From Tubulanus polymorphus (Eukaryota > Animalia > Nemertea), in the NCBI RefSeq assembly GCF_964204645.1, contig NC_134031.1, forward strand, positions 8,494,001 to 8,558,000: DNA of 64,000 bases. The letters are read 5' to 3'. Shown here piece by piece: positions 2,791-54,281 of this stretch. Both the position numbers and the translations under genes were made by a program. The stretch's first letter is position 1, and every line of letters starts with the position of its first letter. The notes below the pieces were generated by a model. It searched no databases. It saw only the letters and a program-made list of their open reading frames with translations, and was not told the DNA's origin.

Positions 2791-3581
2791 AAATGAAACC
2801 ATTCCAGATATCATTATAATTAATTTGATATTCTCTTGATTTCTGTATATAAGGTGTAATACATTTACAATACTTTCACTCATTTTTTAGTTAAAATATA
2901 TGAAATAAATTGAATTAAAAGACATCGTCTAAATCTTTTTCTAAATTAACTTTTTTATTTTTTTATGATTATTTCCATTCAACTTCTTTAATTTCTTACT
3001 TAATTTCATATTTTCATTAATCAATTGATATTTTCATAATAAAAGTACAACGCAGCCAATATTAAACCCCAGCAACTAAACAATGTTTCAAATCACTTTT
3101 TCCAGTTGGAATGCTGAAACCATTCTCATTCATTTAATTAAGAAAAAAAACTAAAAGAATGATAAGTAATTTGAAATATCTTATTTTGAATATATAATCA
3201 TTTATAATCATCTTTAAAATATTAGACTTTTAAATGATTAAATCAAATAACAATTAGACTTACAGTCTAACAATTTAACAGTTATTCATTAACTAATTTC
3301 ACAATGTTTTAACTATTATACATTTGAAATTTTCCAATTACTCATTCAGCTTACTCTTATTTCAATATAGAATTATTATTCTTTCCATAATTGATATGTT
3401 TCATTTTCTGATAAGGCTTTGATTTATGTGATATCAAATATTTGCCGCCACAATGATAATACACTTTCCCATTAGGATTAAACTTTTTAAATTCATTATC
3501 TAAATCACATTGAATTCCAATATTTGATGAATTTTCATTATAGATGATTTATTCATTATCAAAATTAAAATAATATAATTG

Positions 3582-4040
3582 TCATTTTTCAATTCTTAAG
3601 TTTATTATATCATTGTAATCTTTAGAAAGTATTAAATCATCATTTCTTTCATTAAAAGGAGTTTCAAGAATACTTATTATGTTTTCATCTAAATTACCTT
3701 TACAATTTAAAAATGTATTGAATACTGTAGGATTTTTTAGGTTGTTTACATAACTTATATCAACCCGCCATCTTATTAGTTCAGTAATTAAACATGTTTC
3801 TTTTAATGATATTTGATTAATCACAGTAATACTATCGATTTTATATTGGCTTCCATACACTAAATTTGTTGCTGAGATATAATTTTTAATGTTAAATAAT
3901 GAAAATAAGTTATCAATTTCTTTGATTTCGATTTTGAATTTAGGTTCTTCTTCTTCTGTCTTCATTTTTATAACAAAACTTTTATTAAAACTCATACAAA
4001 TATAAATATTCAATGTTAAAATATGAATCATTTCAATCAC
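3582..4040 (-). pseudogene. Uncharacterised element ORF-X remnant
   Basis: NLFSLFNIKNYISATNLVYG...KGNLDENII...PFNER...LILSKDYND..NLRIEK matches the 19363-20280 ORF; stop where element C reads R, with homology continuing past it. Confidence 0.75.
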
Positions 4041-4297
4041 ACCTTACTCACACTTTTTATGTTTTAAAATCAAGAATGTAACACATATAAATATAAATAT
4101 TCAATGTTAAAATATGAATTATTTCACTCACACTTTACTCTTTACACTTTTTATATTTAAAATTGATATTTTCATCAAATCGTTAATCACTCGTTACTTT
4201 TTATTTTATTTCACTCACCACTCACACTTTACTCACACTTTTATTCGAAATCTATGATATTCATATAAATAATGTTCATTTATATGAAATTATTAGA

Positions 4298-4393
4298 AGT
4301 AATGGGGAAAGTGTTGTTTCATATCAGAGGTTGAAGGGGAGAGTGAGCTCGACCTTTCGACCTCTGGTATGAAACAACACTTTCCCCATTACT
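4298..4393. repeat. Terminal hairpin of element A
   Basis: AGTAATGGGGAAAGTGTTGTTTCATA ... TATGAAACAACACTTTCCCCATTACT, 26-bp perfect arms plus an imperfect inner stem. Confidence 0.95.
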
Positions 4394-5971
4394 TACGGCG
4401 AAAGTAGGCCTACTGGTACGTTTACGAAAAATGAAAAACATTTTCAGAAGGGCAACTTGATTTTTTGTGATGTTGTGGTCCAAAGTCTGTGGTTTAGGAT
4501 AGCGTGCCTACCAGATCAGATTCAGATTTTTTCCCTTAGATTTTCGATTAGTCAAGGACAACCTGAAAATTTGAGGGGGATCTATAGGCCCCTAAACCCC
4601 CGTCTCAATCCGCCCTTCCTCAATCCACAATTATAGTACTGTCTATCTGAAAGCACCTCTTTCTAGAATGTGAATCGTCAGGATGAGCCTCTACCTCACA
4701 ACGATTCGAAATGACTCAGGGGCGAGGCCAGGATTTTCTAAATGAGTGTGTGGGGGGTCCGTTAGGGGGTTGCCTAGGCCCCTCGCTAATATAATTTGAG
4801 AAAAACCGTTAATGCGTGAGTTTTCAAAAGGTTTTAAAAAGGGCCTGTATCCTTTTTCGTTTGAAGAATATTTTGGGGCCCAAATAAAGGGAAATTCCTA
4901 AATGTTTTCACGTGGTTCAAGCGGTATACTAGGGCTGTCCCTGGGATGGATCCAGCGTCAAAGGCAGAGGTATCCAGGCCTTGTTTCTAAACTTCGCTAC
5001 AATCTCGTCGTTCACATACACATTGATTTTCTAGACTACCTAGAATTGGCAAAACAGCTAATCGCCTCAACAATTTTTGTATTTTTCCAATTTTTTCAAT
5101 CGCAATTTGGATCTTTCTTCAGAAAACAATACTTCCGAAATGAGAGAGGATTAGAAATTTCAAGGAATTTTAGGGGAGGGTCCCGGATCCCCATCAGGCC
5201 CATACAGAGAATTCTTTTGGGGAGTTCTACATGGGGGGAGGATGGTACCAAAAAGGCACCTTAACAAAAGGCAAGATAGCGATTGATCAATTTGAAAGAT
5301 TTGTTCTCAGTTTAATTTTTCATTTTTATTGTCCAGTAGAAAATTTACAACATTCCAGAAAACAAGGTTAAATGGGCGAAAATTCATTTTTGTTGATAGG
5401 TGTGGTTTTGCTACACTGTTGGTTGTATGTTGTATGATAATATAACAATACATGTGAATGGAAATTTCTGCTCATTGGAACTGGTACCGGTCAAAAGAGG
5501 GTTAAAACTGCCGGTCGCCGAACAAGAATGAACGACAACACTGAACTTGAACCTTTGGTGACATTGACATTGAGAGACGACTTAAACGAAAACGCTTCAA
5601 CATCCGACATACGTGTATATTCAAGTTGTGAAGAAAGAGGCAATGTTTAGAAACAAAGAATAGAACATGTGTGTCGAGAGTCGTTGATTCATAAGGTAAG
5701 TTGTGTAAATGTAAAATGCGCTCGTGTGCGGGGGCCTTAAGACCTTGATACACGAATACGAAACTATAATCCAATCCAAGATCAAACATGAAAGACCAAA
5801 CATAAACTCCAGTAACAAACTCGGTTCATTACAAACATGATTACTACATGTATCGTGTATAGAAACTGCATCAACTTCCATTTTTGCAGAAACCTGATAC
5901 TTGAAAATCTAACGATCCGAGCCAATTAGTTTATGAAATGTGAATTTCAATCATGAATTCGTCTGTGTGAG

Positions 5972-7093
5972 ATGTGGGAGCAGAACGAATCAACCAGTTC
6001 AGCCGCGCAGACTACAGTGCAGTTACTGGCAGTCGACTGCTCGTACAGCACTGATGGATTCTTCATGGCTATCATTCGACTCACTGGTGGAACTCTAATA
6101 ACTTTAATGGGAATCATTTTCAATATTTTCAGTATAATAGTATTACGAAGGCAACCAGTGATTTCCGTATCCACCCAATTACTCATATACCTCGCGTACA
6201 CAGATATTGCATTTTTGTTATGTCGCGGTATTCGAGAACCGCTTCGGTATTGGGTCGGTTGGGCCGTCGAGGGTGACTTCATTTTTCGGCAAAAAGTCCA
6301 TCCGTATCCGCGATTCCGGCATATACCGGAAATCCTTTATGTCCAGCCGGATATATATCTGTCGATTGATTTTTTACGCTACGCAACGCACGTCTCACGG
6401 AACTGGTTGACTGTTTTAATCAGCGTTGAAAGGGCCGTATCGCTCGCGTTTCCATTTTTCGCCCGGGCTAAGATAACTAAACGCCGAGTTTTATACGCGC
6501 ATATCTTAACATCTATGATTGTGTCGTCTGTTTATTTACCGCATATTTACGGGTTATGTCATTATGCCGATTTCGTTGGTTATGATATGTGCACAGGTCG
6601 ACCTGTGAGAGGTATTTTACATACGTTTAATTTTTGGGATCGATGGAGATCGGTAAGTCGCACGTATTTGAGTCCGGCAATTAAAGAAGTGCTACCTTTC
6701 ACGATTATCGTAATTTTAAATGTCTACATCGTCGCAAAAGTCCGTCAAATTTCACGAAATCAGAAAAAAATGACGGCAAAAGAAAGTGAATTAGTAGATT
6801 CTATGAAGGCTATTCGTTTGACTGTAGCCGTTTCAGTAATATTTTTGGTATTTGAACTGCCCAGTTCGTTTCAAAGTTATCAAAAATTTATCAGACTTTT
6901 CGTCGATATACAGGGAGTTTCTTTTCACGGAACATCGAAAAATGTGCAGAGATTTTTCGCCGAATTGTTTCCGATCGCGGACTCGTCTGCGAATTTTGTC
7001 ATTTATTGTTTTGTGCACGATCGCTTTAGACACACGGCAAAACAACTGCTGAGTAGACGATGTACGTATAGGGGTGCCACACGTCCATATTGA
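5972..7093 (+). CDS. Rhodopsin-class GPCR, FMRFamide-receptor/peptide-receptor-like (invertebrate expanded type), single coding exon
   Basis: 373-aa intact ORF with 7 hydrophobic segments: TM1 GIIFN, TM2 LAYTD, TM3 SVERA, TM6 FLVFELP, TM7 SSANFVIYC, helix 8 RFRH. Confidence 0.9.
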   Translation: MWEQNESTSSAAQTTVQLLAVDCSYSTDGFFMAIIRLTGGTLITLMGIIFNIFSIIVLRRQPVISVSTQLLIYLAYTDIAFLLCRGIREPLRYWVGWAVEGDFIFRQKVHPYPRFRHIPEILYVQPDIYLSIDFLRYATHVSRNWLTVLISVERAVSLAFPFFARAKITKRRVLYAHILTSMIVSSVYLPHIYGLCHYADFVGYDMCTGRPVRGILHTFNFWDRWRSVSRTYLSPAIKEVLPFTIIVILNVYIVAKVRQISRNQKKMTAKESELVDSMKAIRLTVAVSVIFLVFELPSSFQSYQKFIRLFVDIQGVSFHGTSKNVQRFFAELFPIADSSANFVIYCFVHDRFRHTAKQLLSRRCTYRGATRPY

Positions 7094-8208: not shown

Positions 8209-9384
8209 CTATAACAATTAACAATACACTAAAATTAACATTTTACTTGGTTTTGCTCAATTAACTACTTTTAGATTATAAAACTTTGGTTTATTTCAAC
8301 AATGAGTATGGCCTGCAAATTTAAATTTCGGGGGGACAAAATATTCATTCATTCTAAAAATTGTATTACTAATGTTCCTAATTTTTGCTGGAATCTAACG
8401 GACTTGGTGATTTATGGTACAACAAAATTACACCGGGCCTGGAGCTTTTTACCGTAAGGGAGCGTCCAAAAACTATGTATCTCTGATTGGGGGAGGGGGG
8501 TTACTGAATTTTGGTACAAAGTGGTACATGGGGGAGGGGGGTCAGCAAAAAAGGAACGTACTTTGAGGGAAGAGGTATTAATCAATCTTGGAACGTACTT
8601 TATGCACCCAAACTCAAATGAAAATAGCCGATACTGGTGTTTAATCGGCTTTTAGTGACTTGTTCAAGCGACTTGTAGTAGACTTCAACTGGGAATTCCC
8701 CATACCAGGTACCGGTATCGATCTTACACGCCGCACTTGTTGGAACCAGGTATTTATATTTTTCATATTTTGTTTTGATTTGTGTTCTTTGCATCAATAT
8801 AATTGGGGGGGGGGGGTCATGGGTATCATGGTACGTACCTATGAGGGGTCAGTGAATTTGGTACAAAGGTGGTACAAGGGGGGTCAGAAAAACGAGAGAA
8901 CTTTTGTTAATTGATTCATACAAGTATATTCTATTCTCATTTTAACTGTGTTAATGTATGTAACTGCATGAATGCGTGTATCATGTATGAGTAATAGGGA
9001 TAATAGGCTTTCAGATCAAAGGTCGAAGGGTCGAGCTCGTAAAAAAATGAAAATAATAATAATTTACAGTTGAATTAGTCGCGCACACTCCTAATTCAAC
9101 TGTAAATTATTATTATTTTCATTTTTTACTCACTCGCCCCTTCAACCTTTAACCTGAAAGCCTATTATCCCTATTACTCTTAAAATAATCATATACATGA
9201 ATAACATTTAAATTGACAGATTATTCAATATAAAAGTATATATTTACAACATTATTTCAATATTCATATTTGTATGAGTTAGATTTTTAAACATTAAAAG
9301 TGTTAGTAAAGTGTGATTGAAATAATACATGATATAAATCATTGAACTTCTAAAATCAATTTAAAAAAAAAATTTGATATTAAA

Positions 9385-10182
9385 ATGGAAGCAAATAAGT
9401 ACTACTGTCCAACATGTAATATCAATATAGATAAATCCCAAAAAGCAAGACACAATAAAACTAAAACACATTTAGAGAATAAATTGAAACTAGAATATAA
9501 AGATGATATATTAGAAACTAAATTAGATGAATTAAAGAATGAAAAAGAAACATACAAATGTGATACATGTAATCAATCATTCAGTGATAAAAGATATTAT
9601 AATGAACATTTAAAATCTAAAAGTCATATTAGAAATATGAATGATGATATTTTAGGTGAAGATTATTTTGATAAAGATAATGATAAGAAACAGAAGACAA
9701 TTAAAAGCATAAAAAATAAATTAAACAATAAAAGACCATACATGGAAGATGTAAGAAATTATATTAATTCATTAGATAATAATAAAGATATAGAGATAAC
9801 CGAAGCATTTAAAAGTGATATTGGTCCAGCAGCTATCGAGTTTAAATTTCATAAAGGAAAAACATTAGAAGAAAATAAAAAACATTTAGAAAATATGAAA
9901 GAAATAATAAAAATAATAACTGATGTTGAATATCCTAAAATAAGTATTTCATCAAAAGTTAAATTCATAAAATCTGAAGATAAACCAATATACAATATAA
10001 ATTCTCATTCACAACATATTATTTCATAACAACATATAGATGATAAATTAGATAAATGTTATAATGAAGTAAAAACTAAAATAGAAGAGAAATATTTTGA
10101 AGGATCTGGTTTAATATTTGATGAAATAATATTTATGACTTTACATGTTTATAACACCAATAAGGGTAAAAAAATATTTTAA
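9385..10182 (+). pseudogene. N-terminal part of a Polinton-type protein-primed DNA polymerase B (two C2H2 zinc fingers plus terminal-protein-like region), truncated by internal deletion
   Basis: CPTC..H..H and CDTC..H..H fingers. Reading through the stop at 10027-10029 gives KIEEKYFEGSGLIFDEIIFMTLHVYN, resembling the conserved EGSGW..(I)..L.I motif of Polinton pPolB N-termini (recalled, not searched). Confidence 0.65.
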
Positions 10183-10252
10183 AGCGTAAGGTTTCAGCGA
10201 ACTCTAACTCTTTTTGAATTTTAACCTATTTTAATAAAAATTTGATATATAA

Positions 10253-11677
10253 ATGTGCTCAAGATTAATTAAAGTTCCCGTGAAAGACATGAGTAATAAA
10301 TATATAAATTCAATATTATATTATCTAACTGTTAACAATAATTTAGCAGATATTTCAGGAGTAAATATAAATAAGTATTATAAATCTGAAAATAATGAAT
10401 TAATTGAAACATCAGATATTTTTTGCGATAATATAATGCTATATAAAATCATGTTAGAAAAAGAAATTATAAAAGAAAATAGAACAACTTTTCTAAACGT
10501 TAATCAGAGAAAGATAACACATTATGAAATTAAAGAATGTTTTAATCAAGGAGATATTATATTGGATAACTTAGCTATAAAAATTACACGTGTTTTAACA
10601 ATTCATGATGATAATTCAAAATCATATATATTAAGTAGAATTAATCAAGAATTGAAATTAACAGATTATATTGCTGTATTTAAAATTTCATTATGCAATC
10701 AAAATTTAAATGAATTAATACAGAAAATGGATAATATTGAAAAATTATTTAATGAAAAAAATTACAATATATTAGATGTAGATGTGACACAAGATTTTAA
10801 AGGATCATTTAATTCAGATGAAATAAAATCAATGTTCGAAAATAGAAAATATAAAGTTCTAAAAGAATTTTCCAATATTTGTGTTTCAGCATTACATAAG
10901 GATGATAAAATAAAGATCTATAATAAAACAGCATGACAATTCAAATCTCCTGGTGTAAATATAAATTTCGGTTCAAATTTAATGAGTTACATAAATTGCT
11001 ATCAAGAGAGGTTAAAAGAATCATTTGAAAAATCAATTGAAACAGGATTGATTAGAATTGAAATAACTAGTATTTCATTTAAAAGAGGATTAAAAGTGAT
11101 GGAAAAAATAAAACAATACTTAAAGAAAGAAAATATTTACTATTCACCTGCATATTTACAACTTAAATCATTATTTGATGAGGTTCAACAGACTGTATGT
11201 ATTTATGACTTGATTGAAAAATGCTTTTATTTCTGTTATTATGGTGATTTATTAGCAAGGAAATTTATAGGATATAAATCTAGGATAAGTAAAAATATTG
11301 AAGAGTCCTCCTTTTTACTTATTTTATCAATGTTTACAATTAAGAATATCCCGTGTTTATACCTAACAATTAATCAAAATGATGATAAATCAGAATTCAT
11401 TATTGAAGCAAAAAAATATATTTAAACTGAAGGAGCAACTGTTATATCTTCAACTAATTCAATGTTTACAGTACTGAATAAATTTATATTTAGATTTAAA
11501 TTACGTGAAACAGGAATTAGTTTTACAACTTTAAAAAAGAGATACAATATAAAATCTAAACCTTTTTATAAATTAGATGCACTTGATATTGAAGAAGATT
11601 TTGATTTAAAATTATTATCTAAAAGTGAATTTAAAAAGTTAGAAGAAATGAAAGAACTTAAAAATAGGCGTTCATAG
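10253..11677 (+). pseudogene. Putative Rep_trans-like (rolling-circle initiator/nickase) protein, ~474 codons with two in-frame stops
   Basis: ORFs 10253, 10982 and 11462 share one frame. Motifs IILDNL, DVDVTQD, IKIYNK, LIRIEIT occur in Rep_trans order. The copy in element C has Cys where this copy has TGA. Confidence 0.55.
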
Positions 11678-12734
11678 CCCTGATAGACACTTTATTTTAT
11701 CAAAATTAGAAAAACCTATTTTCCAAGTAAAGAAAATAACACACAATCATTTTGAAATAATTGATAAAATGGATTTTGAATTGATGAAAAAATATACTGA
11801 ATAATTAAAGATAAATTCTAATGATTTTATAAATGTATGTGATATGCGTAAAGAATCTGATTATTTAAGAAAAATGAAACTTAACAATATGAAAATTAAG
11901 CAATGCGAGCGTTTAGAACTATTGAAAGATAATTCTGAATATAAAATTGAAAGATTTAAATAAAAAAACAATAAGTTAAATAAGTTAGTATTAGATAAAG
12001 TAACTTATTGTTTTTTTATTTAAATCTTTTTGATTTCTATTCACGCTATTGGTTAACAAGAATTGACTAGAATTCAAATAGATTTAACAAGAAATTCAAT
12101 AACTTTAACTGTTAGTATCACTCTTGTATTATTTCATTGAATTATTTCACTCGTTAATTACTCGTTACTTTTTATATTGAAAATAAGAATTTAACGCATA
12201 TAAATATAAATATTCAATGATTTAAATATGAATTATTTCAATCACACTTTACTAACACTTTTAATGTTTAAAAATCTAAATCATACCAAATATAAATATT
12301 GAAATATGTTTAAAATATATCTATATATCTATTTATAAGAGCTCGTTAATTACTCGTTACTTTTTTACTCACACTTTAATAACACTTTTATATTGAATAA
12401 TCTATCAATTTATATGTTATTCATGTAAATTATGTTTATATATATATATGAATATTTTAAGAGTAATAGGGGTGATGGGCTTTCAGGTTAAAGGTTGAAG
12501 GGGCGGGTGAGTAAAAAATGAAAATAATAAAAATTTTCAGTTGAATTAGGAGTGTGCGCGACTAATTCAACTGTAAATTATTATTATTTTCATTTTTACG
12601 AGCTCGACCCTTCGACCTTTGGTATGAAAGCCTATTATCCCTATTACTTGTATGAACCTGTTGCTTTTTGCTTTGTGCCAGTGTAAATTGTTTGTGGAAA
12701 CTAATTGTTACTGTAATTGTAATGTCGGCTAAAT

Positions 12735-13105
12735 TCTGTAATTCATTTGTAATTCATTTCAGCTAGCAACACAGTGTCATCTGCATATAAAAGAATTAGT
12801 AATCTAAACCACAGTGTACCCTGGTCATTAAGAAAAGTAATGCCTTCGCAGCCCTCATTAATGAGATAATTTTCCATATCATTCACAAAAATGGAAAAAG
12901 GTATAGGCGAGAGATTTTCTCCTTGCCTTAAACCTACAAATGATTCAAAATAATCCGATGCCGCTCCGTTTAAGCAATGAAGACTTGGCATTTTGATAGA
13001 TACTGCGAGTAACTCTCAGTATTTTACCTGTAATACCCAAATCAATTACTTTATGCCACATGGCCTTACGCCATATGGTATCGAAGGCTTTACGAAAGTC
13101 TATAA
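12735..13105 (-). mobile_element. Non-LTR retrotransposon (LINE) reverse-transcriptase fragment
   Basis: FIDFRKAFDTI, GLRQGENLSP, LLYADD across a frameshift. Confidence 0.9.
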
Positions 13106-13113
13106 ACATTTTT

Positions 13114-14543
13114 GGCGCTAGTCCAGTATACGACATTATAGTGCGTGCGTAGAGTTACACTGCGTTATTCGGTCAGTGTTCACAGCAGTTGACCGTTGAC
13201 AGTCGACACCTAAAGTAAACTATGAGAACAGGTGGCAACCTGTCAACCCGTCAACCAGCACTGAAGTATAACAGTTTTTCCACCCCTTTAACTGCTATTT
13301 GTCTTCATAATTTTCATTGTCTCTCATAAATCCATTGCGTATTATAAAGTTGCGGATGATTCGGATGATATCGACATTTCGAAACACAAAAAGGCATGTA
13401 TATATAACATTCAAATATAATATATCTAGATAGCTATTAAAATTGGTGGAAGGGTGGTTTTTATGTTGATTTGACAAATCGTTGGTCCTAAATAACCTTG
13501 GGAAGGTTTTTAGCATAGTTAAAAATGTGAATGATTAGGGTTAAGGTTCGGGTTAGGTTTAGAGATAGAGGTTAGAGGACCAAACCGAAGGTTTGGAGAG
13601 ACCCCACTAGTGCACGGGCAGGGGGTTATCCCTGTAAACAAAGTATGAGTTATGTTGTAGTGAGGCGGTCTACGGGACGTTGATGCCTCGGGGCGTGTTC
13701 GTGTCTAGAGTTAAGGGTTACTATGAGGCTTCAATTCAGGAATCAGTGAACTATACCATTGGCAGTTGGGAGACTGTTTCTCTGTTAAGGAACATGAATA
13801 TATCATTTAATATTATAGACGTCTGACGCTGCTGTATGTCTCCACTGATGTGTATGTCTGCACATCAACCAACCTATCGAAGACAAGTTTCCTGCTAGTA
13901 TATGATTAAATGATATATAAAATATTACATCAATTGATTTTAGGGAATAATTAATTAGGAAGATGTCCTCGAAACAGAAGACTAGACGATTAGTATACGC
14001 GTTCACACGGAATCTAGGTGAGAGGCCTATCGTTAACCGTCCGGTACAGTTATCACCTTACTGAGGGTGTCTACCTGTCATCCATCCTGTGCGATCATCA
14101 CCTAACTGTTGTGTAGGGTGTCTACCTGTCAACCGTCCAGTGCAGTCATCACCTAACTGTTGTATTGGGTGCTACCGGTTAACCGTCCTGTGCAGTCATT
14201 ACCTGACTGTTGTATAGGGTGTCTACCTGTCGTCCGTCCTGTGCAGTCATCGCCTAACTGTTATGTAGGGTGTCAGCTGTCAACCGTCCTGTGTAGTCGT
14301 CACCTAACTTGTGTGTAGGGTGTCATCTGTCAACCGTCATTTAGAGTCATCACCTAGTATGTAAGGTGTCGCGTGTCATCAGCTGTAAAATATGATCCCC
14401 AATCAAGGATCTATTTTCATGGAACTTCTTTTAGTTCCATATTACTACGCTTTTATATATTTCAGCTTGCGCATTAATTCCCCGATTTACTCCAAAAGTA
14501 TCTCTACACGTTGCACTATAATGTCGTATATCGGACTTGGGCC
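13114..14543. mobile_element. Non-autonomous DNA transposon, Merlin-like (GG termini, 8-bp TSD, internal ~46-bp tandem repeats)
   Basis: ~41-bp imperfect TIR GGCGCTAGTCCAGTATACGACATTATAGTGC / GCACTATAATGTCGTATATCGGACTTGGGCC; TSD ACATTTTT at 13106-13113 and 14544-14551; tandem units at ~14030-14380. Superfamily assignment is tentative. Confidence 0.75.
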
Positions 14544-14644
14544 ACATTTTTTTGCAGAAAGCTGATACTTGAAAATTTAACGATCCGAGCCAATTACAAT
14601 GGTTTATGATATGTAAAATTCAATCATGAATTCGTCTGTGTGAG

Positions 14645-15570
14645 ATGTGGGAGCAGAACGAATCAACCGGCACAGCCGCGCAGACTACAGTGCAGTTACT
14701 GGCAGTCGACTGCTCGTACAGCACTGATGGATTCTTCATGGCTATCATTCGACTCACTGGTGGAACTCTAATAACTTTAATGGGAATCATTTTCAATATT
14801 TTCAGTATAATAGTATTACGAAGGCAACCAGTGATTTCCGTATCCACCCAATGACTCATATACCTCGCGTATACGGATATCGCATTTTTGTTATGTCGCG
14901 GTATTCGAGAACCGCTTCGGTATTGGGTCGGTTGGGCCGTCAAGGGTGACTTCATCTTTCGGCAAAAAGTCAATCCGTATCCGCGATTCTGGCATATACC
15001 GGAAATCCTTTATGTCCAACCGGATCTTCATTTGTCGCTTAATTTTTTACGCTACGCGACGCACGTCTCACGGAACTGGTTGACTGTTTTAATCAGCGTT
15101 GAAAGGGCCGTATCGCTCGCGTTTCCTTTTCTCGTCCGAGCCAAAATAACTAAACGCCGAGTTTTATACGCGCATATCTTAACATCTATGATTGTGTCGT
15201 CTGTTTATTTACCGCATATTTACGGGTTATGTCATTATGCCGATTTCGTTGGTCATGATATGTGCACAGGTCGACCTGTGAGAGGTATTTTACATACGTT
15301 TAATTTTTGGGATCGATGGAGATCGGTAAATAGCACGTATTTGAATCCGGCGATTAAGGTAGTTCTACCTTTCACGATTATCGTAATTTTGAATGTCTAC
15401 ATCGTCGCTTAAATCCGCCAAATCTCAAGAAATCAGAAAAAAATGACGACAAAAAATTAATTCGTAGATTCTATGAATGCTATTCGTTTGACCGTCGCCA
15501 GTTCATTATATTTTTGTTATTTGAACTGCCCAGTTCGTTTCAAAGTTATCAAACATTTATCAGACTTTTC
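14645..15570 (+). pseudogene. Pseudogenised tandem duplicate of the 5972-7093 GPCR
   Basis: Highly similar from the upstream TTTTTGCAG (~14548). Stops at 14852-14854 and 15410-15412, a frameshift in TM6, and loss of homology after ~15570 (TM7 missing). Confidence 0.93.
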
Positions 15571-16009
15571 TTCGCAGCACAGCAGCGATAACGGGTTTCT
15601 GCCTAATTGGTTCATATGTCGAACTGGGAAGCGTAAGAAGATTTCATCGAAATAATTCTAGCCCATAACATATGACTATTGCCAAGAAGCGCAACCTGGG
15701 TCAACATTATGCTGGATATGATATGTGGATATTAGGAGTCCATTTGTCAAAGCATTGAAGCAATACAGTCCAACTTGTTTATGATGTCTCAGATGGAGCG
15801 CGCGGGGCAGGGCCGTCATTATATTGCTGACTTATCCAAATTACACTTACACAGCGCAACGTCTTTCAGTGTGTAAACTCCGTCGTACGCATTATAGGAC
15901 AGTGAGGAATTGAATTTTAGCCACGAGCCCTTGGCTTGATTGGAGCAAACGACCTTAAATGACTTCACAGAATTTGATACGAGTCTAGGACTTTCTAAAT
16001 TTTTGAAGA

Positions 16010-16454: not shown

Positions 16455-16946
16455 CCCACTGAGTACTGTAGCTTTCTAATGGTGCGCCATGTTTCTTTGC
16501 AATTTGTAATGGGTATTCTTTGGAAAGGGTTCTTTTATATCCGAGAGGGTATTTTTGACCAGGCAATTATGACGCACTTGACGGCCATCTTGGGGTCATC
16601 AGTACTCATTCGTAGGTGGAAAAAAAGTTTTTCCACATCATAATTGATACTTAAGCATATTTTGCTACTATAATCAATTGGAAAGTTGTAGCTCATGACA
16701 TGTTCTATGATCGAGGTGAGTTTCAAGCTCATTGGTTTTTTTTTAATGGCCACCAGGGGGCGTTGAACAATACAATAACTTAGTATTTCTATATTACATT
16801 CGTTCCTGCTGTCTGTGTTAACACACGATTTTACTATGTAAATGATATTGAGCAGGGAGTGTATATTGATAAATATAACCCACAGATTACATCATTTATA
16901 AAAAGCAAATCTGACAGGCTGGCCATTGTGCCCCTTGGGGCTCTTG
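16455..16946 (+). mobile_element. HINE/pearl-like element 3' fragment
   Basis: ~16495-16803 aligns with ~62325-62630; ends in a short GC-rich stem GGCCATTGTGCCCCTTGGGGC. Confidence 0.7.
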
Positions 16947-17776
16947 TTTAAATGAAATACTCGTTATTTCGATTCTAATTAAATCTGTTTCAATTGATTT
17001 TTCAAATGATTCTTTTACCTTTCTTGATAGAAATTTATGTAACTCATTAAATTTGTACCGAAATTTATATTTACACCAGGAGATTTGAATTGACATGCTG
17101 TTTTATTATAGGTTTTTATCTTATCATCCTTATGTAATGCTGAAACACAACTATTAGAAAATTCTTTTATAACTTTATATTTTCTATTTTCGAACATTGA
17201 TTTTATTTCATCCGAATTAAATGATCCTTTAAAATCTTGTGTAACATCTACATCTAATATATTGTAATTTTTTTCATTTAATAATTTTTCAATATTATCC
17301 ATTTTCTGTATTAATTCATTTAAATTCTGATTGCATAATGAGATTTTAAATACAGCAATATAATCTGTTAATTTTAATTCTTGATTAATTCTACTCAAGA
17401 TATATGATTTTGAATTATCATCATGAATTGTTAAAACATGTGTAATTTTTATAGCTAAGTTATCTAATGTAATATTTCCTTGATTAAAACATTCCTTAAT
17501 TTCATAATGTGTTATCTTTCTCTGATTAACGTTGAGAAAAGTTGTCCTATTTTCTTTAATAATTTCTTTTTCTAACATGATTTTATATAGCATTATATTA
17601 TCGCAAAATATATCTGACGTTTTATTTAATTCATTATTTTCAGATTTATTATACTTATTTATATTTACTCCTGAAATATCAGCTAAATTATCATTCACAG
17701 TTAAATAATATAATATTGAATTTATGTATTTATTATTCATCTCTTTCGCGGGAACTTTAATTAACTTTGAGCACAT
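16947..17776 (-). pseudogene. Second copy of the Rep_trans-like gene (frameshifted, 3'-truncated)
   Basis: Near-identical to 10253 onward; DVDVTQD, KTYNK, LIRIEIT retained. Confidence 0.55.
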
Positions 17777-17794
17777 TTATATATCAAATTTTTA

Positions 17795-18393
17795 TTAAAT
17801 TAAATTAAAAATTGAAAAAGAGTTAGAGTTCGCTGAAACCTTACGCTTTAAAATATCTGCTGATTCGATATTATCTGGTTTATTTATTGTAGGTTTGAAA
17901 TTAGAAAATGTTATTACGCCAGTAGAAATTAATATCATTATTCCGCCTAACAGGAATGAAGCGTATCCAACCCATTTTTGTAATTCTGTCATAACTAATA
18001 AATCTTTTTTTAAATCGCTATATAATTTATTTTCATCATCAATTGGTATTACTTGGTTACATAATTTAGAATAACATTTTATAATACCATCACTAATAGA
18101 GTCATTTATTCTTGCTAATCTAGCTTCTTCATATATTTTGAAATGTTTTATTACTTTATCTGGTTTCATATTATCTAATTCTTGAAAAGTAATAATTTTT
18201 CCATAAATTCCTTACATTTACCACTAGCAATTAGTAAATCAAGATGGTGCTTACATGTTAAATAGTATTCAAAATCAATATTATTATTATTTTCAGCACA
18301 ATTAGAAACAACTGTATCTTTATTATCTGTGATACCTAAATCTTCAATTGTCTTTTCAATATCAATATTATTTTTACTCGATTTCTTTGACAT
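17795..18393 (-). pseudogene. Uncharacterised element protein with a C-terminal hydrophobic (TM-like) segment, frameshifted
   Basis: ORFs 18175-18393 and 17795-18169 join through a frameshift (LIASGKCKEFM..ELDNMKPDKV..YEEARL..LYSDLKKD..FLLGGIMILISTGVIT); resembles uncharacterised proteins of invertebrate Polinton-like elements (recalled). Confidence 0.5.
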
Positions 18394-18694
18394 TTATATT
18401 AGAGAAAAAAGCGAAAAAAATATTATAAGTATTCTTCAAATGATACTAGCTAGTTAAATATAAAGAATTTTAAATACTAGCTATTTGAAGTTAAAGAATT
18501 TTTATTCGAATCTTATCAAAATCTATTTAATCTAGTTTTCATAAGAAAATATTAGATTTTGAAAAAAATTAAAATAGAAATAATGGCTAGTTAAAGATAT
18601 GTAATTTTTAATATTTTGTATTTGAATTAGGATTTAGAATATCTCACTACTTTTGTCTATCTATAGGAGCAGTTACTATAACTGTCCAGATAAG

Positions 18695-19417
18695 TCATTT
18701 CGGATCCTCGATAATAAATTCCTCCTCAACGTATCGTTCATTATTTGGATCATTGTTCCATAATTCAATAAATTTCTTTGCTTTATCTAATTGATCCAAA
18801 TATAATTTTATGTCAAGTTTATTTCCTTTCCTAATATTTTCCTTCTTTTCAAGAGGCCTTAAATTCTTCCAATTCCTTATTAATTTCTGGTTGTATTCAT
18901 CATTCATGTTAAATTTAGAAATCGGCAACACATGATCAATGTGGAAATATTCACCATAATTATTCATATTCATTTTTTCATTGAACTGATATATAATCCA
19001 GGATTTGAGAAATTCATATGAACAGCCTAATAAATTAGATAGTGTGGCTGAATGCGTTTCTTTATTGAATAATTTTGATAATCTATTACCTAGACATTGT
19101 TTCAATTTAAAATTAAGATCCGTTTTATATCTTTCTTTTCGATAATTCTTATCGTACACTTTAATATGTCCTCGATTTTTTTCTCTCCATCGTTAATCTT
19201 TTTCTTTACATTTTTCTGCATTAATTGCTCGATATTGTTTATTATTCTGTTTCCAACATGTTTTACAAATATTACGTAAACCATCTTTGTAAAACTTATG
19301 TTTATAATATTCTGCTAATGATTTATTTATTTTACACTTTGAACATTTTTCATTATATATATTTATAACACCAGTATTGTTTGTAATATTGATAGTTTGT
19401 GATTGTTCTGGCTCCAT
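18695..19417 (-). pseudogene. NCLDV-type HNH-like endonuclease with N-terminal CxxC..CxxC finger, frameshifted
   Basis: KCSKCKINKSLAEY..DGLRNICKTC, then LLGCSYEFL..MNNYG..FHIDHVLPISKF..NWKNLRPL..ENIRKGNK. Confidence 0.75.
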
Positions 19418-20280
19418 TTATAATACATATTTTTATTAAAATTTATTTCCATATTTCCATATTTTGAGTTATGATATTCTGATTTAAGATGGTGTGATTT
19501 ATTGCTTCGAGTATAATATTTTCCACAATTACATAAAACGCTTTCATTAGGATTATATTTAGGCGTAACAATTTCATTATCTAAGTTACATTGAATTCCA
19601 ACATCTTTATAAGACTTATTATTATCTAATTCACATTGAATTCCAATATTTGATGAATTTTCATTATAGATAATTTGTTTATTATCAAAATTTAAATAAT
19701 ATAATTGTCTTTTTTCAATTCTTAAGTTAGTCAAATCATTATAATCTTTTGAAAGTATCAAATCACTATCTCTTTCATTGAAAGGAGTTTGAAGTATATA
19801 TATTATGTTTTCATCTAAATTACCTTTATGATTTAAAACGGTATTACATATTTTAGGATTTTTGATTCCATTATCTATTAGTTTAATAATTAAATATGCT
19901 TCATTTGATAATATTTGATTGATTATAGAAATATTATCAATTTTATGTTTTCTTCCATACACTAAATTTGTTGCTGAGATATAATCTTTAATGTTAAATA
20001 ATGAAAATAAGTTATCATTATTCATATTTCTAATATGATTTTTAGATTTTAAATGTTCTTTATAATATCTTTTATCACTGAATGATTGATTACATGTATC
20101 ACATTTGTATGTTTCTTTTTCATTCTTTAATTCGTCTGATTTAGTTTCTAATATATCATCTTTATATTCTAACTTAAATTTGTTTTCTAAGTGTGTTTTA
20201 GTTTTATTATGTCTTGCTTTTTGAGATTTATCTATATTAGTTTTACATGTTGGACAGTAGTACTTCTTATTTGCTTCCAT
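19363..20280 (-). CDS. Chimeric ORF: pPolB N-terminal zinc fingers fused to ORF-X (C-terminal C2H2 finger)
   Basis: The first ~87 aa match the 9385 ORF; from DNLFSLF onward it matches 3582-4040; CNCGKYYTRSNKSHHLKSEYH near the end. Confidence 0.6.
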   Translation of the reverse strand: MEANKKYYCPTCKTNIDKSQKARHNKTKTHLENKFKLEYKDDILETKSDELKNEKETYKCDTCNQSFSDKRYYKEHLKSKNHIRNMNNDNLFSLFNIKDYISATNLVYGRKHKIDNISIINQILSNEAYLIIKLIDNGIKNPKICNTVLNHKGNLDENIIYILQTPFNERDSDLILSKDYNDLTNLRIEKRQLYYLNFDNKQIIYNENSSNIGIQCELDNNKSYKDVGIQCNLDNEIVTPKYNPNESVLCNCGKYYTRSNKSHHLKSEYHNSKYGNMEINFNKNMYYKWSQNNHKLSILQTILVL

Positions 20281-20478
20281 TTTGATATCAAATTTTTATT
20301 AAAATTGATTTTAGAAGTTATTCATATATAAAATATTCATTTATATATGTTATTCATTTATATATGTTATTCATTTATAAAAATATTAAAGTAATTGGTA
20401 ATGTGTTTGTTCAAGTCAAAGGTTGAGTCCAGTGAGTAGAAAAATAATATGGCTTGAACAAACACATTACCAATTACT

Positions 20479-20919
20479 CAGATTATGAAAGCAGAAACTT
20501 CAATGACAATGTTGAGTGGAAGCTGAATAGCCAGGTTTTTTCTGTGATAACCAAGATTTTTGGGTTTCCAGAAATAGATTTATTTGCATCAAGACATATC
20601 GCTCAGTTGGTAGATTATGTGTCTTGGAGGCCAGATCCCTATGCAAAATATATTGACGCATTATCGTTGTCATGGACTAATATGAAATTTTATATGTTTT
20701 CTCCTTTCAGCCTTATCTCTACATGTGTACAAAATCCAGAGGGACTGCTGTCAGGAAGGTATACTCGTTGTTCCCTGTTGGACTACCCAAGCCTGGTTTA
20801 CGCGGTTGAGAATTCTAATACAAAGACCATTAGTTCTACCAAGACTCGAACATTTATTAACTCTTCCCAATCAGGAGAAACTACACCCGTTGCGGGAAAA
20901 ACTACGTAGTTCTTTTGGG
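20479..20919 (+). pseudogene. DIRS pol C-terminus: RNase H end plus methyltransferase-like domain
   Basis: (A)DYESR, EWKL, IDLFAS, DALSLSW, YMFSPF (YxFPPF-like), ILVVPCWTTQAWF. Confidence 0.85.
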
Positions 20920-21926
20920 ATGCAGGGTTTCAGGAATGTCATGGAAACAACAAGAATTTCGCAGAGGACTACCGAAATCATGTGGGAATCGTGGAAATAC
21001 TCTAACTTGATTAACTTTTGTGACAAACGGTCGATTAATAGATTTTGTGTATCTATAGCAGAATTTTTGGATTTTCTGACGGAATTGTACGATGCAGGGC
21101 TTAGTCTTAGTGCTATTAATACTGCAAGGTCGGCAGTGTCAAAAGTAATTTCAGATGATTCTGATGCTGGTGTCTCGGTAGGGGCACATCCATTGGTGGT
21201 TCGTTTCATGAAGGGGGTGTACAATACAAAAACGCCTCAACCCCGATACAGTACAGTCAGGGATGTAAATATTGTTTTAGATTGGATACGTAGAGAGTTA
21301 CCTGATTCGTCGAGTTTATGTTTAAAACGTTTGACAATAAAAACTGTAGTTTTAATCAGTTTAGTGTTAACTGCTAGGAGGCAGTCTATAGGGCTTTTAG
21401 ATATAAAAATGTGTAAAACTTATTCAGAATACAGATTTCAATATAATGTTAATGATCTTAAGCAATCTAGACCAGGGTATAGGCCTCCGGATGCTATTAT
21501 CAAGAAATTCGAGGAGGACTGCAGGATTTGTCCGTATTTAGCATTGACAGAGTATATTTAAAAGTCTAGTGCCATTCGGGGTGATGTTACACATTTGTTT
21601 GTTGGGACGATAAAGCCTTATAGATCACTTAGTTTGGACACATAAGTAGGTGGATTAAGCAAGCACTGAAAGAAGCTGGTGTAGATACATCGGTCTTTAA
21701 GTCACATAGTCTTCGGGCGGCAGCAGCTTCCAAGGCAAATAGCAAAGATGTTCCTATTAATTATATACTGAATACTGGAGGTTGGGCGAAAGCTACGACA
21801 TTTGCTAGGTTTTATTGCAAACCAATTATAGACTCCAGTGCTGTGAAAGATTGGAAATCACATACTTGGTTAAAACATTGGAATTTGAATCAGAGTGGTG
21901 CAAGTAATAGATATACTGGATTCTGA
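20920..21926 (+). pseudogene. DIRS tyrosine recombinase (stop codon and frameshift)
   Basis: SAINTARSAVS, HPLVVRFMKG, TARRQS, KQSRPG, FKSHSLRAAAAS..GGW....FARFY. Confidence 0.92.
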
Positions 21927-22229
21927 TATTATGATAATTTTCTATCAAATAAAGTTGATTTTATTATAAAATTGATTTACTGTTTTGTCGCCACTTTGAA
22001 GTCTCATTGGATCTCTAACTGGGAACCGAAACGACGTAGAATTGGAAAGTTAAACGAGCCTTACCTTAAGGTGAAGTTTGACTGAGATTCTACGGAGTGA
22101 AGGTGAACCAGTTAGAGATCAAATGCCCACCCATCCCTAACCCACAGGTATGTGGTTGGTTCCAAAACAGAGTTGAATACTGATTGGCGCATGCGCAGTG
22201 CATATCTCATTTAATCTCTAACTGGTTCA

Positions 22230-22900
22230 GAGCACAAGTTAAATGTAAAAAACTTTAACCTGAAAGCGGAGTTGCTAGTCATGTATTTCAGACCTAACAC
22301 AATTTTGATTTCGCTAATGCCGAATTAATTTACCCTTGCAGCGATAAAACTACAAGACATATTTTGGAATCTGCATTAATAATTGAAAATTCGAACAACG
22401 TTGTAAATCTTAACAATAGTTTTTCACCCCATAATAAACTTATATCAAAATTCCTCTGTAAACTGGTTAAACTCAACACTTGATTTCCCCTTGATCCTTT
22501 GTTATTTGTCACTCATCAATTTTAGTCTCTCCACTTGTATTCACCATTGTTTTAATTTTAGTGCCCCCTAGTTTGTCTCTTTACTACTGATTTTAAGTTT
22601 CAATTTATATTTATACTCACTATTGTTGTTTATAATCACCCTTTTGGTTTGCTTCCCTTTAATCTATTTTAGCGTGTAACTGTTTCTACGTTAGTTTTCC
22701 TTTAGTATCATCTCTGATTACCGGAATTAGTCTCTTTGTCTCTGGATTGTATATATATCTCATAATTTTTGTAGTATCTCATTATTCCTGAAGATGACTA
22801 TTAGGATATAGTCGAAACGTTGAAATAAACTACTATCTCGAAGTTACATTTTCGGACTTTTTTCGTTATAATTGTGGGATTCTCTCTACATTGTAAGTCT
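22230..22900 (+). mobile_element. Penelope-like element 3' fragment (GIY-YIG endonuclease C-terminus plus T-rich tail)
   Basis: Translation from ~22268: GVASHVFQT*HNFDFANAELIYPCSDKTTRHILESALIIENSNNVVNLN; hammerhead core downstream. Confidence 0.75.
22781..22828 (+). ncRNA. Minimal type I hammerhead ribozyme-like motif
   Basis: CTGAAGA-T-GACTAT(TAGGAT)ATAGTC-GAAA-CGTT, with flanking TTATTC/GAAATAA as imperfect stem I. Confidence 0.65.
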
Positions 22901-23584
22901 GAATTCGCGGTTGAGTTTGACGCTCGAGGTCGTCCGGTAATTTGTAGGCTTTTCGGGATGTACTTTTATCAATGGATGACAATGCTTTGCGTTATTCTTT
23001 TCGCTGTTTAGACCCGGTTATTACACGGGATTAATTCATAAAAGATTACTATACGCAAATTCGAAATGGTCAGGCGCTTAGTTATATTTCTGACAGAATT
23101 TAAAATTACGTTTATAAGCTGTTGGTAGTCGAATCTGAGAGGAGTTACATTTTATGAACAATTTTTGGCTGGAAAGTGGACCATTAATGATAATAATAAT
23201 CAACAGAAATACAAGAGGGTTTCTGCGAAAGCAGCAGAAACCCTAATAAGTTTTCAATTCAGTTCGTTCAGCTGATTTACTGTAATCAATCATTCCAGTG
23301 CGATTTTGATATTACTCCTAGTTTCGCTTATTCGATGAGACGACATTTTAACCTGGAAGTAACTCGATATTGACATGTTTGACATGCATCGAAAATGTAA
23401 AATGGAGGATGGGATCACCCGGTCTCTACCCGACTCAAACTGAGGTTATATACTGGTGTACCAGAACACCAATTCAATATGGCGGCTATCGATGGATTCA
23501 GTGGCGCCACCGTACTACACCCGAGAGAACTTGCGTTGTCTCGGCGCATGTTTCAGTTTGGTCTGATAGGTCACGCCTCAGTAG

Positions 23585-24615: not shown

Positions 24616-25074
24616 ATATTTTCTAGTAATAAATTCGGTACGGTACACGGTAATAATGCCAGAGGTAAAAACGCCAGAGGAAAAATGCCAGAAGGATATA
24701 TGCGCTATATTTGTATATTCATATTCAAAACAAAACAACAAAAACAAGAATTCTAATCCAATGCTTTAAACCAAGCTTTTTATTCCATTAATTATGACAA
24801 ACTAGTGTGTAAAATCCTCATGAACTTTTCATTTCATTGTTGATTTGACACCTGTTGATTAAGGAAATTTAATCATGATTTAGGTCCTAATTATAATTAA
24901 AGTTAATTATGCTTTGTGAAACCGGCCCCTGGTGTTGTGAAACTTCTATCTTCCCTAGCTACCACTAGATCCGGCCTCCGATGAGATGGAGACTGATATA
25001 TCCTTGTTTTTGTACGGTGGCGCCACTGAATCCGTCGATAGCCGCCATATTGGATTGGTGTTCCGGTACACCAG

Positions 25075-25472
25075 CATCTTCACCCGTCAAGGGATTCGAA
25101 CCCACTACGCTAAAGCTATTCCCCGAACCCCTATATACTGGTGTACCATCCTCGCTTGCCAGGGGTCCGGTATCACTACCGAACTCGCTTCCACCAGCCC
25201 CCTGGCCTCACGAAGCGTGATTTCATTACTGGCGCTGTTGCGCATGACGTCATATATCGATTTGCGAAATACTTCCTTGTTCAGTAAAACGTTCGCTGAT
25301 TGGTCCATTTAACGGGAAAACCAATAGAAGCCTAAAGTCGTTTGTTACAAGCGCTGTGATTGGTACGACCGGATTCTGGTCGGCTAGTAACCACTCCAAC
25401 GACTCGTGAGGTCAAGGGGTTCGGCGAACAGCTTTAGCGTAGTGGGTTCGAATCCCTTGACGGGTGAAGATG
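25075..25472. mobile_element. MITE with ~57-bp TIRs
   Basis: CATCTTCACCCGTCAAGGGATTCGAACCCACTACGCTAAAGCT.. is inverted at ~25415-25472. Confidence 0.8.
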
Positions 25473-48341: not shown

Positions 48342-48381
48342 TCCTAATTACCGTTGTATCGTGCATTACTGGCGAGTTTAA

Positions 48382-54151: not shown

Positions 54152-54281
54152 GGATCTGTATCCTAATAACTGTCGCTGATTGGCCGATAAACGCCCGCCA
54201 TTCAAGGAAAGTGTGGAGAATATAGTTAGAGAACAATAGAGTGGATCAAGCGAGACTCGAACCTGGGCCAGTAAATAACTA

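Follow-up and report, generated by a model that had tools for sequence, protein, structure and literature searches.

A decayed, hairpin-ended mobile element of the nemertean Tubulanus polymorphus carries a pseudogene for a Rep_trans-like protein

The DNA analysed here (the window) is a stretch of 64,000 nucleotides from a chromosome of the nemertean Tubulanus polymorphus (NC_134031.1, positions 8,494,001 to 8,558,000), and the reading frame at positions 10253–11677 of its forward strand is probably the dead principal gene of a hairpin-ended mobile element, encoding a Rep_trans-like nickase/ligase with the fold of TATA-binding protein (TBP). Three insertions of the element, copies A, B and C, lie within a 17-kb part of the window, and the Rep-like gene is the main gene of copy B, in the chromosome of an animal. 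A first-pass annotation of this DNA had read the frame as a Rep_trans-like protein, a reading that is supported by the predicted fold and by the constellation of catalytic residues. The parts of the gene are as follows.

10253–11677, forward strand: Rep_trans-like pseudogene (translation, homologue alignments and family conservation)
10427–10429, 10781–10783 and 10793–10795, forward strand: Asp codons at the predicted catalytic positions of the pseudogene (codon count)
10919–10921, 11054–11056 and 11060–11062, forward strand: Tyr, Arg and Glu codons, respectively, at further predicted catalytic positions (codon count)
11682–11948, forward strand: remnants of the C-terminal half of the gene (tblastn with the long ORF of related locus L003 and the next ORF of related locus L001)

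Translated as a single frame, positions 10253–11677 comprise 475 codons with two in-frame stops, a TGA at 10934–10936 and a TAA at 11423–11425, and hold three open reading frames (ORFs), all in the same frame (10253–10936, 10982–11425 and 11462–11677). An intact metagenomic homologue of 427 amino acids, P0002, aligns with this frame at 51% identity over 425 residues and runs across both stop positions; the three ORFs thus make up a single gene that is disrupted in copy B, as had been claimed when they were merged into one protein at first pass. Equally, the first stop of copy B is a Cys codon in copy C (17015–17776), as had been stated. An alternative genetic code in which TGA is read as Trp was considered and rejected, both because intact relatives of 427–957 amino acids are free of stops in the standard code and because copy C has a sense codon at the TGA site of copy B. 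Most of the C-terminal half of full-length relatives (~400 amino acids) is gone from copy B, and the remnants at 11682–11948 are what was left after internal deletions. The pieces of the gene were searched separately; with the copy C ORF as query three metagenomic proteins were returned, P0002 among them, and this natural intact homologue was used for folding in place of a read-through protein.

The motifs quoted for the window at first pass (DVDVTQD, IKIYNK and RIE) are all present in the frame. The Asp codon of an FCDNI motif lies at 10427–10429, the Asp codons of DVDVTQD start at 10775, 10781 and 10793, the Tyr codon of KIYNK is at 10919–10921, and IRIE supplies Arg at 11054–11056 and Glu at 11060–11062. 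By codon count the Tyr-to-Arg distance is 45 residues, in agreement with the spacing claimed between YNK and RIE; the 42 residues given for the interval from DVDVTQD to IKIYNK hold for the distance from the last Asp to the Tyr, whereas the gap between the two motifs is 38 residues.

The frame belongs to a large and divergent protein family. When 1.84 billion representative proteins were searched with a profile, 263 clusters passed E ≤ 1e-3 and 100 of these E ≤ 1e-10; members are mostly 600–1,000 amino acids long and match via their N-terminal ~400 residues, with intact relatives mostly of 800–950 amino acids. No Pfam domain was found in ten long members and no NCBIfam match in eight members; PHROGs likewise gave no replication or nuclease family, and sequence searches of the PDB with two family profiles returned nothing relevant. 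The C-terminal half has 12% column identity with no invariant column, and no Pfam or PDB match. Among the 30 clusters that were looked up, three have a public name or a telling context. Two of them, P0008 and P0010, come from the mealybug Planococcus citri and are labelled 'uncharacterized protein' (XP_065207965.1 and XP_065207970.1); in this species locus L013 holds three paralogues within 25 kb (473–2212, 13017–15833 and 21757–25137); one paralogue of this species is an intact single-exon ORF of 939 amino acids with host-like GC content, and the tandem intact paralogue suggests recent activity or domestication. P0018 is encoded on a 201-kb contig beside a long interspersed nuclear element (LINE) retrotransposon, and the contig is for this reason taken to be eukaryotic; the rest are from metagenomic contigs that are AT-rich and 3–9 kb long. 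The family is real and its members are resident in animal genomes.

Conservation was counted in an alignment of 97 sequences with ~22% identity to P0002, using only the rows that cover each position and P0002 numbering. D158, D162, Y204 and K206 are each conserved in 96/96 rows and G246 in 94/94, followed by R249 (93/94), E251 (90/92), K202 and N205 (94/96 each), F44 and D46 (87/88 each), K125, T160 and G221 (91/96 each) and R200 (90/96). The Tyr and the acidic residues of the DxxxD, YNK and RxE motifs are therefore near-invariant among divergent homologues, which is the outcome that the first-pass reading called for, and D46 is a further conserved acidic residue that had not been listed there. 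In every sequence where a simple pattern scan locates both motifs, YNK and RxE are 45 residues apart. The context of the Tyr has Lys at +2, with the +3 Lys of the YxxK form usually replaced by Phe.

Prediction with AlphaFold from a 6-sequence alignment was useless (predicted local distance difference test score, pLDDT, of 34), whereas AlphaFold2 with the 97-sequence alignment gave a confident model of P0002 (pLDDT 92.7; predicted template-modelling score, pTM, 0.91). When this model was compared with 350,542 PDB chains by Foldseek, the two best matches were 4cwe_A (rank 1, E 4.7e-4, probability 0.97) and 4cwc_A (rank 2, E 1.3e-3, probability 0.82), both of which are RepDE, a pT181-family rolling-circle initiator from Staphylococcus aureus; the structural comparison proposed at first pass thus returned the very family that had been named. 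TBPs rank after RepDE, 1ais with probability 0.99 and a template-modelling (TM) score of 0.46 on the target. Among the 50 PDB matches listed there was no HUH (His-hydrophobic-His) protein and no transposase or integrase, and matches to the reverse transcriptase of human immunodeficiency virus had probabilities below 0.3. Among viral models, rank 4 is the Inoviridae replication-associated protein G2P (E 4e-5), and at ranks 1 and 3 stand entries of the A0A345M/N accession series; Rep_trans proteins of Inoviridae are among the A0A345M accessions (PMC13107129). Viral TBPs and several uncharacterised giant-virus proteins of 770–1,140 amino acids were also matched. On this modelling the N-terminal ~270 amino acids appear to form a TBP-like domain, the nearest solved relative of which is a Rep_trans initiator.

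Rep_trans proteins have a TBP-like fold, and RepDE uses Tyr191 together with the metal ligands D46, D142 and E214 (PMC13107129). The pT181 protein RepC carries the motifs RLDLAFD (R140, D142, A144 and D146), IRIYNKK (Y191) and WRVE (R212 and E214), and these motif residues are invariant in a nine-sequence Rep_trans alignment; across 18 plasmid and inovirus Rep_trans sequences, including seven Inoviridae initiators, the patterns xxD, TRxDxAxD, RxY[ND]K and WxRxE are conserved. A protein search with RepC returned only relatives at least 86% identical. The pT181 motifs quoted at first pass (RLDLAFD, IRIYNK and WRVEIE) are present in RepC and contain D142, Y191 and E214 (PMC13107129). The apparent correspondences between the family and RepC/RepDE are as follows.

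D158/T160/D162 of the family: D142/A144/D146 of RepC/RepDE, with the same i, i+2, i+4 spacing
Y204-N205-K206 of the family: Y191-N192-K193 of RepC/RepDE
R249-x-E251 of the family: R212-x-E214 of RepC/RepDE
F-x-D46 of the family: F-D46 of RepC/RepDE

The distance from D158 to Y204 is 46 residues in the family, and that from D142 to Y191 in RepC is 49. To place the residues by local context, RepC blocks around the four published catalytic residues, defined beforehand, were moved stepwise along the family profile (~420 positions). For the Y191 block the best score was at Y204 and for the E214 block at E251 (rank 1 in both cases); the D142 block at D158 ranked 2–3 for the two wider blocks and 17 for the narrowest, the top position being the pseudo-symmetric strand of E251, and the D46 block ranked 6–9 at D46. 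The invariant residues are collinear with the RepDE set and have matching local contexts, so that the claimed identity of motif order with pT181 Rep stands. All four catalytic residues of RepDE appear, by sequence comparison, to have counterparts in the family: Tyr204 for Y191, Asp46 for D46, Asp158 for D142 and Glu251 for E214.

The element that carries the gene in copy B is delimited by the following features.

8990–12648 (3,659 bp), forward strand: element copy B, decayed, internally deleted and AT-rich, with inverted-repeat ends (composition, self-BLAST and terminus alignment)
8984–8989, no strand: left target-site duplication, TGTATG (flank comparison)
12649–12654, no strand: right target-site duplication, TGTATG (flank comparison)
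8990–9346, forward strand: left terminal inverted repeat, the outer ~190 nt (8990–9179) palindromic (BLAST and folding)
12213–12648, reverse strand: right terminal inverted repeat, the outer ~190 nt (12462–12648) palindromic (BLAST, terminus alignment and folding)
9370–9380, forward strand: upstream motif AAATTTGATAT, ending 4 nt before the ATG of the zinc-finger gene (exact match)
9385–10029, forward strand: gene for a 214-amino acid protein with two C2H2 (U1/matrin-like) zinc fingers (ORF and Pfam)
10238–10248, forward strand: motif AAATTTGATAT before the Rep-like gene, the start of which reads TAAATG (exact match)
11936–12043, no strand: AT-rich palindrome (AAAAAAACAATAAGTTA...TAACTTATTGTTTTTTT) directly after the remnants of the Rep-like gene (self-inverted BLAST, 79.6% over 108 nt)

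Copy B has ~21% GC by comparison with ~35% in the surrounding host DNA. Similarity between its termini begins exactly at AGTAATAGGG (AGTAAT) on both sides, and the flanks beyond are TGTATG; both terminal inverted repeats and a target-site duplication, as in DDE transposons, are therefore present in this copy. The inverted repeats are ~360 and ~440 bp long and 88–92% identical by self-BLAST (8990–9237 against 12648–12384, 88%; 9238–9346 against 12320–12213, 92%). Folded as single-stranded DNA, the left palindrome has an energy of -72.6 kcal/mol (z = -20.4) and the right one of -60.3 kcal/mol (z = -14.2), and a related element in locus L002 also has a palindrome at its boundary (z = -7.6). Strong terminal palindromes in B, C and the L002 element provide a candidate hairpin origin near the gene, in which the nick site is not assignable from sequence. 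The genes of the element are all on one strand, with a strong purine skew, and the complete element may measure ~7–9 kb.

The product of the zinc-finger gene scored just under the curated Pfam cut-offs (zf_UBZ 1.5e-5, zf-met 5e-4 and zf-C2H2 2e-3), and its C-terminal part is unlike that encoded by copy C. The motif TTTTAATAAAAATTTGATAT occurs as an exact match before both the zinc-finger and the Rep-like genes of B and C, 4 nt from the ATG (in copy C at 17781–17791 and 20285–20295, both on the reverse strand). Many gene starts in the element and in its closest relatives (L001–L003) read TAAATG. Such starts resemble the late promoters of poxviruses and giant viruses, and together with the upstream motif they hint at transcription by machinery of viral type. 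The palindrome at 11936–12043 looks like a terminator-like hairpin that might signal the end of a transcript.

On this basis the protein would be a metal-dependent, site-specific single-strand nickase/ligase that cuts one strand at or in the terminal hairpins of the element and stays joined to the 5' phosphate via its Tyr; the freed 3'-OH would prime strand-displacement copying, in rolling-hairpin or rolling-circle style, of a linear or circularised element, and the nickase may also contribute to mobilisation. Catalysis, hairpin substrate and mode of replication are inferences. The end palindromes in an integrated copy, the gene order on one strand and the purine skew fit a self-copying replicon without proving it. 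The 6-bp target duplication points to insertion at a staggered cut; this step could be the work of the Rep-like protein, of a helper element or of host repair. The wider proposition, that animals (the nemertean, the mealybug and the hosts behind many of the metagenomic contigs) harbour a hitherto unrecognised class of small AT-rich linear mobile replicons copied by a nickase of the Rep_trans branch on their own terminal hairpins, is put forward tentatively, and we would place it somewhat short of an even chance.

A number of observations weigh against the nickase/ligase reading. The window copy of the gene is a dead pseudogene, by its two stops and its C-terminal loss. In the family, Arg140 of Rep_trans is mostly Asp and the Tyr-to-Glu distance is 47 residues by comparison with 23 in RepC, two differences that had already been pointed out at first pass; the insertion of 24 residues between Tyr and RxE forms two short helices in the model. 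PF02486 had no match among the window pieces or 10 long homologues, nor in any of the 97 members even at E ≤ 10. Profile–profile comparison by hhalign was not significant for the 97-sequence profile against nine Rep_trans sequences (probability 0.35%, E 0.17) or against 18 (probability 0.5–0.8%, P 0.07–0.13), with P overall at 0.07–0.17 and probability below 1% across Rep_trans profiles and settings. With the narrow Rep_trans profile, variant settings gave a best local match that pairs the RxE of the family with the RxD strand of Rep_trans; with the broader profile it is the Tyr motif that gives the best local match, and a relaxed path pairs D46 with D46, D158 with D142, Y204 with Y191 and R249/E251 with R212/E214, in order. 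TM-scores to RepDE are low (0.20/0.28; root-mean-square deviation 8.4 Å), so the likeness to RepDE is a similarity of fold and not a close match, and models of TBP and of poxvirus-type transcription factors were matched by Foldseek as well. As for the element, its inverted repeats and 6-bp duplication are hallmarks of an integrase or transposase, yet no polymerase or integrase was found in copies A–C by Pfam and PHROG scans, and Pfam, PHROG and NCBIfam scans of the window pieces and family members gave no transposase or integrase family; nor would a Helitron-like rolling-circle transposon be expected to have such inverted-repeat ends and such a duplication. Finally, a distant member of the family, P0015 (957 amino acids), is encoded at L018 (153–7662 of a 7.7-kb sequencing-run assembly contig) 575 bp upstream of a 1,353-amino acid protein, which is a protein-primed family-B DNA polymerase (DNA_pol_B_2, PF03175, E 1.4e-51). 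This arrangement hints at a different replication mode, and modes of replication may vary within the family.

The similarity to Rep_trans that was proposed at first pass therefore stands in structure, with RepDE as the top match, and fails in profiles, with no Pfam match and hhalign P-values of 0.07 or above. Because the family fails both the PF02486 model and profile–profile comparison, it is not filed as a member of PF02486; we place it as a new and distant branch within the superfamily of TBP-fold Tyr endonucleases, alongside archaeal Rep-Arvir.

It is rather unlikely that the protein is instead a transposase, that is, a Tyr nuclease which moves the element via its terminal hairpins and itself makes the 6-bp staggered cut, with excision and insertion as a single or double strand. 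The precise inverted-repeat ends and the target duplication, the three insertions within 17 kb, the standing of the gene as the sole large conserved gene of the element and the tandem paralogues of Planococcus citri, one with an intact ORF, are all in keeping with such a role, and HUH-type Tyr nucleases do act as hairpin-guided transposases in IS200/IS605. To our knowledge, however, no Rep_trans-type enzyme transposes or makes target duplications; the Tyr-nuclease transposons IS91, Helitrons and IS200/605 leave none, and a GC content of 21% versus 35% suggests a replicon with an extrachromosomal life. The roles of transposase and initiator are inseparable by sequence.

Quite unlikely, too, is the reading as a giant-virus-type factor for DNA binding or transcription that has no catalytic activity. 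It would share with Rep_trans only the TBP fold, and would be comparable to viral TBPs or to the TBP-like portion of the large subunit of the poxvirus/iridovirus early transcription factor. Such a protein would account for the Foldseek matches to cellular TBPs (1ais, above) and to giant-virus proteins of similar length, namely mimivirus R327, IIV3 016R and 'early transcription factor large subunit-like' proteins (a look-up of R327 gave no functional annotation); it would also suit an AT-rich element with TAAATG-type gene starts and with HNH and zinc-finger genes, which are frequent in giant viruses and their satellites. But a DNA-binding TBP domain needs no invariant Tyr with three invariant acidic residues, these residues match the catalytic set of RepDE in order and local context, and the best PDB E-value is that of RepDE and not of a TBP.

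That the protein is a terminal or priming protein for a protein-primed family-B polymerase on a linear replicon, its invariant Tyr being the priming residue, is very improbable. The adjacency of P0015 to such a polymerase in L018 and the linear look of the window element, with its inverted-repeat ends, would agree with this; however, a polymerase of this type was present in 1 of ~12 loci examined and is absent from the window element, a Tyr accompanied by three invariant acidic residues is what a metal-dependent nuclease would have, and the fold match is to a nickase. Chance resemblance of the motif order in a junk frame of AT-rich DNA, which the stops and deletions of the window copy and the commonness of short YNK-like motifs in AT-rich coding sequence might have suggested, has next to no probability and is excluded by the 263 homologous clusters, by motifs 94–100% conserved at ~22% overall identity, by a confident predicted structure and by the fact that Rep_trans, named beforehand, was the top match of 350,542 PDB chains.

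The other two copies of the element comprise the following features.

16947–20479, reverse strand: element copy C, with a more complete middle part and truncated within the Rep-like gene at ~16946 (BLAST and ORFs)
20390–20478, reverse strand: terminal palindrome of copy C, different from that of B and starting with the same AGTAAT (sequence)
16947–17776, reverse strand: Rep-like gene of copy C, with a 253-amino acid ORF (17015–17776), a frameshift, RIE in another frame and truncation (ORFs)
17795–18169, reverse strand: copy C gene for a 124-amino acid protein with one hydrophobic (membrane-like) segment (ORF)
18695–19417, reverse strand: HNH / endonuclease VII-like gene of copy C, split into ORFs of 74 and 154 amino acids (PHROG 1035)
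19363–20280, reverse strand: zinc-finger gene of copy C, 305 amino acids with two C2H2 fingers (ORF and domain scan)
3495–4394, reverse strand: copy A, a fragment in which one terminal region and a portion of the zinc-finger gene survive (repeats and BLAST)

The Rep-like gene of copy C is 94% identical to that of B in DNA over 911 nt. All genes of copy C are on one strand and additionally include a 72-amino acid ORF. Since the two HNH ORFs match consecutive parts of one PHROG 1035 profile (positions 64–110, E 7.8e-8; positions 128–222, E 1.7e-4), this gene is also broken; the 124-amino acid protein had no family match in a PHROG scan. The zinc-finger, HNH and membrane-protein genes of the window element are not common to any other fetched locus. 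Elsewhere in the family, the same element of ~7.5 kb was assembled from four metagenomes (L014, L015, L016 and L017); in L014 (7996–8854) its last ~600 bp, with a 175-amino acid gene, lie between perfect inverted repeats of 132–140 nt and are seen in both orientations, so that this part could be an invertible or flip-flop terminal segment. A related-loci search with a tight alignment found nothing in viral or metagenome collections.

Copies A, B and C are interspersed with duplicated host segments in mixed orientations. A host segment of 300 bp occurs twice (5929–6228 and 14602–14901, 97% identical), each time overlapping the start of an ORF for an Srw-type G-protein-coupled receptor (5972–7090 and 14888–15412); the ORF at 5972–7090 is intronless, and its product shares 82% identity with a protein of Tubulanus polymorphus. 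Fragments of reverse transcriptase and satellites occur near the element: retroelement fragments lie next to its copies at 12743–13136 (reverse strand) and 20454–21561 (forward strand), including a stretch of reverse transcriptase that has a YADD motif, immediately to the right of copy B, and one unit of a 154-bp satellite adjoins the truncated end of copy C. ORFs just past the end of copy C had no Pfam match. Long (TA)n-rich microsatellite blocks in inverted arrangement (1100–1470 and 2435–2800) lie left of copy A. Tandem arrays are present at 47654–48347, 62452–63047 (with a related copy at 16459–16803), 23562–24610 and 31514–31927, their units being satellites of 144 bp and 154 bp, a G-rich array of 59–76 bp and a fourth array of 108 bp. 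An inverted repeat of 249 nt with 95% complementarity and a 50-nt gap (54279–54527 / 54578–54826) is foldback or MITE-like (miniature inverted-repeat transposable element) and unrelated to the element.

No account of a Rep_trans-like protein or element from a eukaryote turned up in full-text searches of the accessible literature, and we know of no element for which hairpin termini, inverted repeats and a target duplication are described together with a Rep_trans-type enzyme. If the nickase/ligase reading is true, the Rep_trans superfamily spans all three domains of life, and a eukaryote-resident family completes the picture for a second, independent type of rolling-circle nickase; a rolling-hairpin scheme would have been reached with a fold other than that of the HUH nickases of parvoviruses, Helitrons and Replitrons, a new enzyme class would stand in eukaryotic mobile DNA beside DDE enzymes, Tyr/Ser recombinases, reverse transcriptase and HUH enzymes, and a new kind of eukaryotic mobile element would be defined. 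The finding also offers a first clue to the function of several hundred 'hypothetical' proteins of 800–950 amino acids, annotated insect genes among them, none of which has an assigned domain. The predicted nicking is directly and cheaply testable on the terminal hairpin.

Among known systems, Polintons/Mavericks share with the window element a 6-bp target duplication and terminal inverted repeats, and one distant family member adjoins a protein-primed family-B polymerase as described; unlike them, the window element has no polymerase, integrase, capsid or packaging genes and measures 3.7 kb by comparison with 15–20 kb. Helitrons and Replitrons are likewise eukaryote-resident mobile DNA with a Tyr nuclease as the key enzyme, but they use HUH enzymes and have neither terminal inverted repeats nor a target duplication, both of which are present here with a different enzyme fold; no His-hydrophobic-His was seen among the conserved columns of the family and no HUH family in Pfam scans.

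The parvoviruses, including adeno-associated virus (NS1/Rep78), are alike in being small linear elements with both ends palindromic and mutually inverted and one large Tyr nickase (putative in the window element), and in keeping complete terminal palindromes in integrated copies; they differ in that the putative nickase here is TBP-like and not HUH, that there is no helicase domain or capsid gene, and that the inverted repeats of 360–440 bp reach beyond the palindromes. Transpovirons are 7-kb linear episomes of giant viruses with ~22% GC and terminal inverted repeats that can integrate (PMC11788076), and resemble the element as small AT-rich linear DNA with terminal inverted repeats and genes for zinc-finger and small membrane proteins. 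Their defining large gene is a helicase, whereas that of the window element encodes a TBP-fold protein without an NTPase motif. Membership was rejected, there being no helicase family match and no shared nucleoside triphosphate-binding motif in the family, with a Walker A-like string in only 3 of 59 long members and at no common position.

The TBP-like Rep_trans domain is used by pT181 RepC/RepD, by gpII/RstA of filamentous phages and by MOB_T relaxases. This group (PF02486, including pT181 RepC, pC221 RepD, RepDE as 4CWC/4CWE, RstA-type proteins of CTXphi and MOB_T relaxases of integrative and conjugative elements, ICEs) provides, in its TBP-like fold, the best structural match of the family, which shares with it a putative catalytic Tyr in R-x-[KR]-x-Y-N-K ending a beta-hairpin, the first-strand acidic D46, a D-x-[TA]-x-D strand and an R-x-E strand in the same order, and a variable C-terminal part after the catalytic domain. 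The family proteins are, by contrast, 2.5–3 times longer, with an unrelated C-terminal half of ~400 amino acids; they occur in animal hosts, and their replicon, with its inverted-repeat hairpin ends and target duplication, has the look of a linear one and not of a circular plasmid or phage. HUH enzymes occur in all three domains of life, whereas Rep_trans appear to be bacteria-only, archaeal Rep-Arvir being the first extension beyond, with relatives recognisable solely by structure (PMC13107129). Rep-Arvir (DUF7845, PF25227), which was not among the Pfam matches of the 97 members at E ≤ 10, is parallel in being a group of TBP-fold Tyr endonucleases tied to Rep_trans only structurally, for which Foldseek likewise gives giant-virus TBPs and Inoviridae initiators, and in having variable C-terminal regions (PMC13107129). 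An adjacent DNA hairpin serves Rep-Arvir as origin (PMC13107129), to which the terminal hairpins of the window element may be likened. Rep-Arvir proteins belong to archaeal viruses and plasmids and have a KHYYM-type Tyr context and a central winged-helix domain, whereas the family described here keeps the canonical YNK and RxE contexts and is much nearer to the bacterial motifs.

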